A model generated the notes under the pieces. The model was not told the origin of the DNA. It made no database searches and saw only the letters and a program-made list of their open reading frames with translations. A stretch of DNA of 62,916 nucleotides, the filler included, from Reticulomyxa filosa (lineage: Eukaryota; Protista; Foraminifera): assembly GCA_000512085.1 (NCBI GenBank). It is 16 parts of 16 records of this genome, joined end to end, with 100 filler letters (N's around TTAATTAATTAA, not from the genome) between each part and the next. Parts side by side here need not be neighbours in the genome. Positions count along the whole stretch, not along the records: positions 30,883 to 33,715 come from ASPP01004167.1; 15 more parts are not named here. One strand, 5' to 3'. Of this stretch, positions 6,314-33,815 are shown one piece after another. The position numbers and the translations under genes were made by a program. Within the stretch, counting starts at the first letter, position 1. Every line of letters begins with the position of its first letter.

Positions 6314-6977
6314 ATGACAACTCTTGGCAATAAGAAACGAACTTCAATACAACTAACATTGGTAAACTTTTAGAAAGTTTGTTGTCTTTTTTTTGTTTTA
6401 CTTATCACGTGTGATTTGTGATTGAAACAGTCTGAGGAAGAAAAGATTAAAGCAATTTTACAACATTGGATTAGAATATTGCATATTAAATTTGGATGGA
6501 TTTATGATTTTGACAAACTTGTTGTCAATTATGTTATGCTTTATTTTTTATTTTTCATTCAAATGAAAATATGATCTTCTGATATTTATTTGTTATCCAT
6601 GATAATAACTTGACACAGGTAACTACTATTTTCATGCTCGACACATTTCGTTCATCATCCAGATTACTTAAAACATTTACTGGACACACAGATTGTGTAA
6701 GTAGTATTGATTGCTCAACAGTTGGTGATTATCAATGGATTTGTTCTGGATCAGATGATAGCACAGTTCGTGTATGGGATTTTGATAGCAACAAACAAAT
6801 TCAGTCATTCAATAAACATTTAAATCAAGTAACTTGTGTGAAATTTTCACCATATCATTATTATAATAATCACCAAAATGTCATTTGTTCTTCATCAATT
6901 GACAAAACCATTCGTTTTTGGGATTTCAAACATAATAAGCAATTACAAATATTTAATGAACACACTGATGGTATCGG
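6314..6977 (+). CDS. WD40-repeat protein, 5' part; join(6314..6361,6431..6532,6619..>6977)
   Basis: MTTLGNKKRTSIQLTL | SEEEKIKAILQHWIRILHIKFGWIYDFDKLVVNY | VTTIFMLDTFRSSSRLLKTFTGH..., with two phase-0 GT-AG introns. Cut by the contig end. Confidence 0.85.
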
Positions 6978-7077
6978 NNNNNNNNNNNNNNNNNNNNNNN
7001 NNNNNNNNNNNNNNNNNNNNNTTAATTAATTAANNNNNNNNNNNNNNNNNNNNNNNNNNNNNNNNNNNNNNNNNNNN
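6978..7077. other. Artificial contig spacer (N44-TTAATTAATTAA-N44). Identical spacers at 9524-9623, 23079-23178, 26364-26463, 30783-30882, 33716-33815, 36857-36956, 43996-44095, 46546-46645, 47735-47834, 50899-50998, 51999-52098, 53249-53348, 55365-55464 and 61351-61450
   Basis: The same 100-bp pattern occurs 15 times, and its core puts stops in all six frames. Confidence 0.98.
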
Positions 7078-30882: not shown

Positions 30883-31137
30883 TATATTTCCCTGTTTATG
30901 TTGTTACTTTCTATGTTCTACTGTCTATGCCGCTTCTGTCTAGTTGTTCCAGTCTATGTTTTCCTGTTTATGTTGTTCCAGTATATGTTATTCCTGTCTA
31001 TATTGTCCTGTCTATGTTGTTCCAGTCTATGTTGTTCCAGTCCATGTTGTTCAAGTCAAGTCTATGTTTTTCTGTGTATATGCTATTCTGATCTAGGTTG
31101 TTCCGGTCTAGGTGTCCCTGTCAAGATTGTTCCGGTG
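30883..31137. repeat. Degenerate 14-15-bp minisatellite, consensus ~GTCTATGTTGTTCCA
   Basis: Near-perfect tandem units gtctatgttgttcca at ~31010-31050, with many decayed units on either side. Confidence 0.85.
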
Positions 31138-31412
31138 GGTCCTAGAAATCGTAACCACCAACCCTCTACGTGGGAGGACCTAGTAACACACTTACATATT
31201 TTGTAGTGTGGCCAAGGTGAATTCACCAGGTGGACGTCACCACAAACTTGTGGTGTTTATTATTTAAAACATAAACCTAAAAAAAAATAAAAACAGGTAT
31301 GATGAAAATCAAAGTCAAAGTTCAAATCAAGACCAAGATTCGAATTCATATGCAAATGTAAATGAATGTGAGAACAACAAAGACAAGAACAAATGATAAG
31401 ATATACTCAACA

Positions 31413-33345
31413 GAAATTGGAGAAACAAAACCAGGAATTAATTTGCAATGATATTGTAGCAATGAAAACTGTTTGGCATCAAAAATCAAATTACTCGTAT
31501 GTGTGAATATTGGTTTTGTAATGCTACATTTATGAACATGCAATGAATAGTATTGAAATTAAAAATTTAATGGCAGAAATACAGAAATATGAAATTACTA
31601 TTGTAAAATTATCCAGTTTAAAAGGAAACGAAAGACTATTGGAAAAGATTCAAACAGATTATGGTGATAATTTTAATCAAACATTTGCTATATGAAGATT
31701 TACAATCTTATGTGATAATCAAATAAGAAGAGGAATTAAAATAAGCAAGTAATGAAACATTAACCAAAATTAATGATGTAATTTGCGAAATGGATTGATA
31801 TAAATGAAATTTAAAAAATTGCAAATTGTTACAAACCACATTCAAAAATTCGAATATTAAGACATCCTCAATTAAAGGAAATAAGTAAAGAACAAATTGC
31901 AGACATTAAAATTAATCAATTTTGTACATTCATTTTATTTGAATATTTTAAGACACATATTATGGATAAAATAAATCCAGCAAGTTGTACTGATGTTATA
32001 TTATTGTTAAAAAAATCAAGGAAAGAAGAATTAGGAGAATACACAACTATGTCTCCATAACATCAATTCCTGTTTCTATCTCATTACAAAAAATGTTATA
32101 ACGAATTAAATGAAGACAAATCATTTCTCAAGCATTATAAATGAAACAAATCAATAAAGAGATAATGGATATTGTTCATGAAAATATTTCATTTGTATTT
32201 ATTTTTGATGGATTTGATGAAATTTTTGATAAATATAACAATAATAATAATGGAGATATTTTTATGAACATTAACAGGTCGAAGTCATGTATTAAATGAT
32301 AAAGATATTTTAATTGGTTCAAAGAACAACATCAATGATATATTCATTGCCTTTTTCAAACCACAAATGAATGGATAGATTGATGAAAAAAATAAAACGA
32401 ATGCATTGCAAAATCTAGGATATTTATTCATGTTGCAAAAACAGAAGATATTCGGGAAAAATATTTTGATGGTGATAGTATTGCTAAATATGTATTTAAA
32501 AAAGTTGATAATCATAAATATCAATTTTTATATAAATCATCTCAAGAATATTTGATATTCTTTCATGGAGATCCAATGATATTACTATTGATAATCAATA
32601 ATTTCAACAACAATTTGAAACACATGTTCCAAAATTATCTATTAATTGTAAATTATTAAATGAGGAATTGGGAATCATCAAAATTAGAATAATATAAAAA
32701 TCAATTATGCAATTTTAGATCGTGTATTTCTTGAAGGAACTGATTTCACTAATGCAACCAAAGTAAATTTCACAAATGCATCAATGACTGACATTTACTT
32801 TGGGGAATATGCATATTTAGAAAGACATATAGATGTTGTAAAGGGTATTCAATTTTCACCAGATGGAACAAAAATAGTATCTTATTCAAATGATAAGATC
32901 ATTCAAATATGGGATGCATTCTCAAGAAAACAACTTCATGTACTAGAAGGACATTCTGATGAAATAAGAAGCGCTCAGTTTTCACATGATTGTTCTAAAA
33001 TTGTATCTTCAATTATTGAGTGGACATTCAAGGCGTGTGAACAGTATGAAATTTTCATTAGATGATTCTAAAATTATTTCAGGTTCAACTGATAATTCCA
33101 TTCGAATATGGGACGTATCTTCTGGGACACATCTTTTATCATTAGAAAGACATGAAAAAGAGGTAAAGAGAGCGTAATTCATATATAATGAATCAAAGAT
33201 TATATCATACTCATATAATAAAATTATTCGAATATTGGATACATTATCAGGTCAACAACTTCAATTATTGGAAGGATATACACATGATGTAAATGGAATT
33301 CAATTATCATCAAATGGTTTAAAATGCTTATCATATTAAATATAT
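31413..33345 (+). pseudogene. Decayed STAND/NLR-like gene: Cys-rich domain, RelA/SpoT-like motif, NACHT, pentapeptide repeats, WD40
   Basis: In order: EIGETKPGINLQ*YCSNENCLASK; SLKGNERLLEKIQTDYGDNFNQTFAI*RFTILCDN; IPVSISLQKCYNEL; Walker B FVFIFDGFDE (~32192-32221); TGRS; LEGTDFTNA..VNFTNASMTDIYFGE; QFSPDGTKIVSYSNDKIIQIWD. Many stops and deletions. Confidence 0.75.
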
Positions 33346-33815
33346 TATTGAACAATGGATAACATAAGCTACTTTATTTAAAGTAATGAAAATATATGAC
33401 ATATGATAATAAAAATGTAACAGTAAATACAAATACAAATGGTAATGATAAAATTATTTTGTAAATATTATTTATTTTAATATCGCAAACACACACACAT
33501 ACAAAAAAAAAATAAATTAGAAACAGAAAGCAAAGAAAATGAATTGAAGAATATAGAGCAGTTAGTAATAAAATTACTTTTTTTATATTGTTATATTTTA
33601 TATTTTTTTTTTTTAGAAATAATGAAAAAAACAAGAAGAACAAGAAATACAGTGAATGAAACTAATGGTAATAATAAGAGTGTATAAAAGAAAATGGGTA
33701 AAACAGAAAATCAGTNNNNNNNNNNNNNNNNNNNNNNNNNNNNNNNNNNNNNNNNNNNNTTAATTAATTAANNNNNNNNNNNNNNNNNNNNNNNNNNNNN
33801 NNNNNNNNNNNNNNN

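Follow-up and report, generated by a model that had tools for sequence, protein, structure and literature searches.

The stretch of DNA analyzed here (the window; 62,916 nucleotides [nt]) is from the foraminiferan Reticulomyxa filosa, and all positions below are those of the whole window. The locus of interest lies on a piece spanning positions 30883-33715, which is 73% A+T and whose plus strand contains stop-free stretches of 25 to 125 codons in alternating frames, with recognizable protein motifs. According to tblastn, positions 31413-33336 of the plus strand are colinear with full-length R. filosa proteins such as ETO08206.1 (1368 amino acids [aa]). This protein (hereafter P0002) and ETO36350.1 (P0006; 1734 aa) both served as tblastn references, and the contig carrying the P0002 gene is designated L002. 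The locus is a dead pseudogene, i.e., a decayed and internally deleted paralog of a large R. filosa family. Very probably, this family joins a RelA/SpoT-type, Tas1-like domain, predicted to act as a pyrophosphokinase effector, to a NACHT-WD40 switch. The pieces of the broken gene were analyzed one by one.

The first segment of the pseudogene (31413-31532, plus strand like all the others, frame 2) is the N-terminal remnant of a Cys-rich beta-sandwich domain, delineated by tblastn against P0002 and P0006 and by the alignment of paralog domains. It is interrupted at 31449 by a TGA where paralogs carry a conserved Gly, and the remainder of the domain (about 80 aa, residues 72-151 of P0002) is deleted. 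The next segment (31534-31719, frame 0), identified by tblastn and phmmer, corresponds to the N-terminal third of a RelA/SpoT-like synthetase domain (LKGNERLLEKIQTDY...RFTILCD) and spans a Syn1-like K-x-K...R..EK motif along with the Syn2 strand. It shares 66% identity with residues 152-213 of P0002 and 82% with paralog P0066 (62 aa). A TGA at 31693 again takes the place of a conserved Gly, and the catalytic Asp position is occupied by Ala (FAI followed by a stop, compared to FDIG in the paralogs), with TGA as the next-but-one codon. A deletion junction follows at 31720-31726. When compared to L002 by blastn, window positions 31533-31723 match 6453-6643 and positions 31726-31860 match 6918-7051, revealing a clean 274-nt deletion (L002 6644-6917) that removed the synthetase core, including Syn3 and the ExQ strand, and shifted the frame. 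Searched with Pfam, the N-terminal pieces of the window copy matched no family, and the RelA_SpoT family was not found on any window piece even at an E value of 10, this signal being confined to intact paralogs.

Downstream of the junction, tblastn identified the C-terminal helix of the synthetase and a helical linker ahead of NACHT (31724-32039, frame 1 and then frame 2), with TAA codons at 31724, 31742, and 31812 and small internal deletions. A stretch of 77 aa containing Walker A is deleted directly after this segment. The NACHT core is represented by a remnant carrying the strand IPVSISL and the Walker B motif FIFDGFDE (32045-32263, frame 1; tblastn), with stops at 32099, 32111, and 32138, and by the sensor-1 strand LTGRS (32271-32402, frame 2; tblastn), with a TAG at 32376. 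Only Walker B and LTGRS are thus retained from the NACHT motifs, and the Walker B piece scored 13.4 bits against the Pfam NACHT model (cutoff of 26.7). The helical or winged-helix region forming the C-terminal part of NACHT (32438-32682, frame 1 and then frame 0, TAA at 32599) shares 60 to 73% identity with P0006 by tblastn and is flanked by deletions of about 87 and 50 aa. It leads into a shortened pentapeptide-repeat linker (32673-32816, frame 2, TAG at 32685; Pfam and tblastn) with a 12-aa deletion. Within this linker, the pentapeptide-like stretch that carries the deletion (about 32706-32789) reached 18 bits against Pfam Pentapeptide (PF00805; cutoff of 20.2). Four WD40 repeats complete the locus (32817-33336, frame 2 up to about 33007 and frame 0 thereafter, TAA at 33175; Pfam and tblastn), with PF00400 scores of 44.2 and 40.9 bits (cutoff of 27).

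Taken together, the ten colinear segments recovered by tblastn with P0002 and P0006 follow one another in frames 2-0-1-2-1-2-1-0-2-0, which amounts to nine frame changes, and contain 12 in-frame stops (7 TAA, 3 TGA, and 2 TAG). Two of the TGA codons are located at conserved Gly codons and several of the TAA codons at positions encoding Gln in paralogs. Five coding segments are absent (72-151, ~214-300, 432-508, which includes Walker A, 654-740, and 826-876 in P0002 numbering), as are most of the WD40 repeats, and about 630 codons are still recognizable. These are 50 to 60% identical overall to the best paralogs, with a maximum of 82% (P0066) in the 62-aa effector remnant. With neither a catalytic Asp nor an ExQ strand nor Walker A, with little of its propeller left, and broken by these stops and frame changes, the window copy is incapable of the function proposed for the family. 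An earlier note on this DNA had listed, in order on the plus strand, a Cys-rich domain, a RelA/SpoT-like motif region, NACHT pieces, pentapeptide-like repeats, and WD40. All of these were present in that order and were homologous to the matching parts of paralogs by tblastn. The note had also described Walker A and the ExQ motif as missing, and both indeed fall within deleted segments, to which the replacement of the catalytic Asp by Ala can be added.

A tblastn search under the standard code (code 1) retrieved residues 1-1200 of P0002 from the contig that carries its gene. Because the paralog proteins are read under the standard code, the stops in the window copy are real. A ciliate-type code, in which TAA and TAG encode Gln or all stops are reassigned, was suggested by the AT richness of the DNA and by the TAA codons at Gln positions, but it was ruled out since TGA and TAG, too, stand in frame where codons are conserved and since R. 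filosa relatives use the standard code. A search of sequencing runs with 31-mers of the window gave a sole match, to one wetland metagenome (6%), and no RNA run was matched. Internal deletions are also common in other gene models of the family, and this pattern of decay is consistent with birth-and-death turnover.

The intact relatives of the pseudogene could be recovered with the very peptide flagged in the earlier note. A phmmer search with a 57-aa piece (31522-31692) found 16 proteins, the best with an E value of 2e-13. Because this value was reached by the 57-aa piece alone against 1.8 billion proteins, the match to the paralogs is far beyond chance. Among the matches that were looked up, all were from R. 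filosa except for a spurious fungal one of low complexity. Searches by profile and by region added 52 short gene models and 59 long ones (752 to 1990 aa) carrying the domain, for a total of about 110 domain-bearing gene models, all from R. filosa bar one ENA fragment. While many gene models of the family are partial, intact members are about 1,400 to 1,900 aa long and full-length genes sit on contigs of 10 to 27 kb. The usual order in long members is a four-Cys beta-sandwich, the RelA/SpoT-like domain, a helical linker, NACHT, a pentapeptide stretch, and WD40 repeats forming one or two propellers. This domain order, together with the catalytic motifs of a nucleoside triphosphatase (NTPase) and of a pyrophosphokinase, is conserved across dozens of paralogs. 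The P0002 gene is intron poor, with 4307 nt on L002 for 1368 aa and a single tblastn high-scoring segment pair covering residues 1-1200.

Some members depart from the usual layout. P0065 (RFI_08856) carries the RelA/SpoT-like domain in tandem (residues 126-315 and 508-697) ahead of NACHT, P0110 carries it at residues 714-900 without NACHT motifs, and P0010, P0005, P0023, and P0026 have an extra N-terminal helical segment. A related fragment, P0004, is named "CUE domain-containing protein" in UniRef, but Pfam found no CUE domain, so that a link to ubiquitin binding is no more than a possibility. Short WD40-only gene models directly adjoin family members (positions 10357-10827 on L002 and 7845-8561 on contig L003) and may derive from this family as pieces of propeller that became detached or decayed. 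Outside R. filosa, a tblastn search of plasmids with the domain returned nothing, and neither did its profile when run against bacterial and archaeal genomes. No close prokaryotic donor was found by either, and no prokaryotic or fungal relative was retrieved at the sequence level. Similarly, an 81-aa piece of the linker matched nothing among viral and metagenome contigs.

The identity of the N-terminal effector was examined in the paralogs. PF04607 (RelA_SpoT) was matched by 46 of the 48 paralog domains at an E value of 0.01 or less (best, 3.3e-7), and no other family recurred. The fragment P0038 scored 28.8 bits, above the 27-bit gathering cutoff, and P0065 carries a precomputed PF04607 call. 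When profiles of the domain were searched against the PDB, the sole sequence match was Tas1 (6OX6; E values of 0.005 to 0.012), with an aligned block running from the Syn1 motif through the Syn2 strand. An AlphaFold2 model of residues 140-330 of P0002 (predicted local distance difference test [pLDDT] of 73) was compared to solved structures. The best 50 rows of a Foldseek search of this model against the PDB were all RelA/SpoT synthetases, including Tas1 (E value of 1.4e-6), exported small alarmone synthetases (SAS), Rel, RelQ, RelP, SpoT, and CapRel. With VIA-align, the best 24 rows were again all RelA/SpoT synthetases, led by Tas1 (Z score of 11.4, root mean square deviation of 2.9 Å over 120 residues) and followed by SAS1/2 (about 10), CapRel (9.8), and long RelA/SpoT homologs (about 8). 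Structural neighbors of the domain in the ESM Atlas include RelA_SpoT clusters as well; ESM Atlas features of the 57-aa window piece gave no usable match. These data support the assignment of the paralog domain to the RelA/SpoT-homolog synthetase fold, with Tas1 as its nearest solved relative, as far as the predicted model can tell.

The catalytic motifs of the domain are strongly conserved. In the alignment of 48 paralog domains, the basic and acidic residues of Syn1, the F-D-x-G-R motif of Syn2 (FDIGR), and the E-x-Q motif of Syn4 (EMQ) are invariant, which includes D64, G66, R67, E127, and Q129 in domain numbering. Both strict motif strings are kept in 49 of the 53 long paralogs that have the whole domain. 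An hhalign comparison with E. coli RelA and SpoT was colinear over 139 columns and placed the Asp at RelA D275 and the Glu at RelA E335, with a weak E value of 0.073, and an 11-sequence profile aligned with E. coli RelA alone over the Syn2 motif only (E value of 0.29). The earlier note had made its effector call dependent on intact paralogs with a RelA/SpoT-like domain ahead of NACHT, pentapeptide repeats, and WD40, and on their D..R, ExQ, and Walker A motifs. The domain stands at this place, as seen from the Pfam, PDB, Foldseek, and VIA matches, and all of the motifs are present and conserved.

Conserved C-x4-C and C-x2-C pairs characterize the Cys-rich N-terminal region of the paralogs, which was modeled with high confidence as an all-beta sandwich (P0002 residues 28-150, pLDDT of 86). 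It corresponds to no Pfam family, and a comparison to solved structures gave no Foldseek match with an E value below 0.001 and a best Z score of 5.5 in an exhaustive VIA search. We treat this predicted beta-sandwich as an orphan domain ahead of the effector of a NOD-like receptor (NLR). Paralog NACHT domains (PF05729) scored 36 to 43 bits (cutoff of 26.7), and Walker A (GxxGxGK[ST]) and Walker B (hhhDGxDE) are present in nearly all 59 long paralogs. The pentapeptide stretch of P0003 reached 24.6 bits, above the 20.2 cutoff, and intact paralogs have 9 to 14 or more WD40 repeats.

Could the window copy be a functional gene whose stops and frameshifts reflect an alternative code, tiny introns, or sequencing errors? 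This idea draws on the AT-rich nature of this protist DNA, on the several in-frame TAA codons where paralogs have Gln, and on some frame changes located at homopolymer runs, which could be sequencing errors. The stops and deletions are not explicable in that way, however. All three stop codons are found in frame, the standard code suffices to retrieve paralogs from the contigs that encode them, and the five missing coding segments of 50 to 90 aa take with them Walker A and the catalytic core, a loss that neither introns nor sequencing errors can cause. A functional window copy is therefore extremely improbable. We attach just as little credence to the proposal that the pieces are separate genes or fragments joined by decay or misassembly, such that no single effector-NACHT-WD40 gene exists. 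The source assembly is highly fragmented and many gene models of the family are partial, which would be in line with such a history, but the ten segments follow exactly the order seen within single full-length paralog genes on 10- to 27-kb contigs, and the same architecture recurs in dozens of paralogs.

A more serious contender is a RelA/SpoT or generic polymerase beta (Pol-beta) nucleotidyltransferase (NTase) fold devoid of pyrophosphokinase activity. The domain would then be a pseudoenzyme or adaptor, or an enzyme with other NTase chemistry such as nucleotidylylation or cyclic-nucleotide synthesis, serving as an oligomerization or signaling module of the NLR. Several observations weigh in this direction or against the reading preferred here. 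Most members score below the Pfam cutoff, typically at 16 to 20 bits, and the sequence links to solved RelA/SpoT enzymes are weak (E values of about 0.005 to 0.07). The spacing of Syn2 is atypical (D-I-G-R in place of D-x-x-G-x-R), and the acceptor loop of Syn3 is non-canonical, being His-rich and without G-Y-x-S-x-H; the substrate can therefore not be read from the sequence. Confidence in the structural model is moderate, given a shallow alignment of close paralogs only, with pLDDT falling below 50 right after the ExQ strand. Generic Pol-beta NTases (Cid1, cGAS, and Pol lambda) also align with the model, with Z scores of about 7. Nonetheless, RelA/SpoT synthetases outrank other NTases in both structure searches, the best of them by 3 to 4 Z units, and the only PDB sequence match is Tas1. 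Moreover, 48 paralogs show no variation at the Asp that binds Mg, at the Glu of ExQ, or at the basic residues of Syn1, which would be unexpected for a dead enzyme. A domain devoid of pyrophosphokinase activity thus appears unlikely. Neither of the findings that the earlier note named as fatal to its proposal was made, since a RelA/SpoT fold is predicted in the intact paralogs and the window pieces are colinear with single paralog genes.

We infer the enzyme activity, product, and biological role of the family, and the proposed mechanism draws on the biochemistry of Tas1 and of toxic SAS (toxSAS) enzymes (PMC7229694, PMC12691689). By analogy with signal transduction ATPases with numerous domains (STAND) and NLRs, sensing of a ligand by the WD40 propeller would release the autoinhibition of NACHT. 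The NACHT domain would then exchange its nucleotide and oligomerize, so that the N-terminal pyrophosphokinase domains would be brought together or freed. Once activated, these would move pyrophosphate from ATP to an acceptor, which may be an adenine or guanine nucleotide or the 3′ end of a tRNA. The outcome could be ATP depletion, a toxic or signaling alarmone, or a block in translation, such that the affected part of the syncytium would stop growing or die. A second message is another candidate output. The proximity to Tas1 favors adenine nucleotides as putative acceptors, along with ATP depletion. Given the non-canonical acceptor loop, however, the product may instead be (p)ppGpp or tRNA pyrophosphorylated at its CCA end as in CapRel/FaRel2.

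Going one step further, the family may be a working innate-immunity or allorecognition system of this giant syncytial foraminiferan, in which ligand-activated NACHT-WD40 oligomers switch on the Tas1-like pyrophosphokinase, killing or arresting the local cytoplasm. We regard this as a tentative proposal, conceivable but short of probable. It covers (pp)pApp synthesis with ATP depletion as well as tRNA pyrophosphorylation, and an origin either independent of fungal RelA_SpoT NLRs or shared with them by transfer. If true, it would be the first case in which a eukaryote employs the alarmone-toxin chemistry of bacteria for the death effector of an NLR.

The architecture as such is already known from fungi, and the R. 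filosa family is its protist counterpart. A 2014 catalogue of fungal NLRs already contained RelA_SpoT-NACHT-WD40 proteins, for instance from Gaeumannomyces graminis (Dyrka et al. 2014, PMC4986451), and these are still uncharacterized (PMC10197012). The likeness is one of architecture: a RelA/SpoT N-terminal effector, a NACHT nucleotide-binding and oligomerization domain, and C-terminal WD40 repeats in one polypeptide. In both cases the genes form large, variable birth-and-death families in a syncytial organism. However, R. filosa belongs to another supergroup (Rhizaria, Foraminifera), and its proteins have two additional parts, with a four-Cys beta-sandwich preceding the synthetase domain and a pentapeptide stretch preceding the propeller. 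Furthermore, the RelA_SpoT effector is rare in fungi (less than 1% of annotated N-terminal domains), whereas it heads about 110 gene models in R. filosa. A literature search found no paper tying Reticulomyxa or Rhizaria to NACHT proteins of this kind. What is new is that a foraminiferan has this family, and on such a scale, along with the affinity of its effector for Tas1, the extra Cys-rich domain, and the pentapeptide linker.

Other known systems resemble the family in part. Tas1/Apk1, the type VI (pp)pApp synthetase toxin of Pseudomonas aeruginosa (6OX6), is the nearest solved relative by both sequence and structure, and exported alarmone synthetases (8VX3; PMC12691689) are grouped with it as close known systems. 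Tas1 and the R. filosa domain share the Syn1 block (K..ER...KI..DY.GD) and a D-x-x-R variant of Syn2, yet their identity is only about 18%. In addition, Tas1 is a toxin that bacteria secrete, with delivery domains fused to it and an immunity protein that restrains it, whereas the R. filosa domain is fused to a eukaryotic STAND switch. The toxSAS enzymes, including CapRel, are fused or two-gene toxin-antitoxin defense systems that act by tRNA CCA pyrophosphorylation or (pp)pApp synthesis (PMC7229694, PMC11782079). They are similar in that a toxic effector of RelA/SpoT fold is kept off until its own sensor part detects an invader, and CapRel aligns structurally with a Z score of 9.8. In contrast, the CapRel sensor is a small C-terminal antitoxin-like domain rather than NACHT-WD40, and toxSAS are bacterial or phage borne. 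Finally, bNACHT, Avs, animal NLRs, and fungal HET-E/D also possess a NACHT domain with Walker A, Walker B, and a sensor-1 TxR strand, as well as the order of N-terminal effector and C-terminal repeat sensor, but their effector types differ from that of the R. filosa family.

Fungal RelA_SpoT effectors have been annotated since 2014 and are still called "minor yet intriguing". The presence of about a hundred copies in a second, unrelated eukaryotic lineage argues that the architecture is useful and not accidental. Since the nearest relative is the toxin Tas1 and not the housekeeping ppGpp synthetases, a concrete biochemical hypothesis can be formulated, namely, ATP depletion, a toxic alarmone, or pyrophosphorylation of tRNA. 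Catalytic residues are retained throughout the paralogs, and specific intact genes can be named (for instance, ETO08206.1 and RFI_21712). The orphan four-Cys beta-sandwich is an addition to the known accessory modules of NLRs. As for the pseudogene locus, its sole importance is that it attests to birth-and-death turnover, which is typical of families of immune receptors.

Apart from the pseudogene, a search of positions 30883-33715 for tRNA genes found none, and the minus-strand open reading frames are short and unremarkable. Upstream of the pseudogene, positions 31137-31222 (plus strand) give a weak full-length match to the hepatitis delta virus (HDV)-like self-cleaving ribozyme RF02682 (24.7 bits compared to a cutoff of 44; E value of 0.099 on the piece). 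In this candidate, P1 spans 7 bp and opens with a G.U wobble, the loop of the P3 stem matches the consensus exactly, and a P4 hairpin and a J4/2-like stretch, GGCCAAGG, are present, whereas the GG of J1/4 that P1.1 requires is imperfect. Because ribozymes of the HDV type are often located at the 5′ ends of non-long-terminal-repeat retroelements, the pseudogene may be bordered by the remnant of a retroelement. Nothing similar to this sequence was found beside the two paralog loci compared. Ahead of the candidate ribozyme, a tandem array at 30891-31052 comprises about 11 copies of a 15-nt unit (consensus, CCTGTCTATGTTGTT; 78% matches), and three copies of a unit related to this array are found at 31092-31136. 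This repeat region is T rich on the plus strand, with a GC content of 36 to 44%, higher than that of the rest of the piece.

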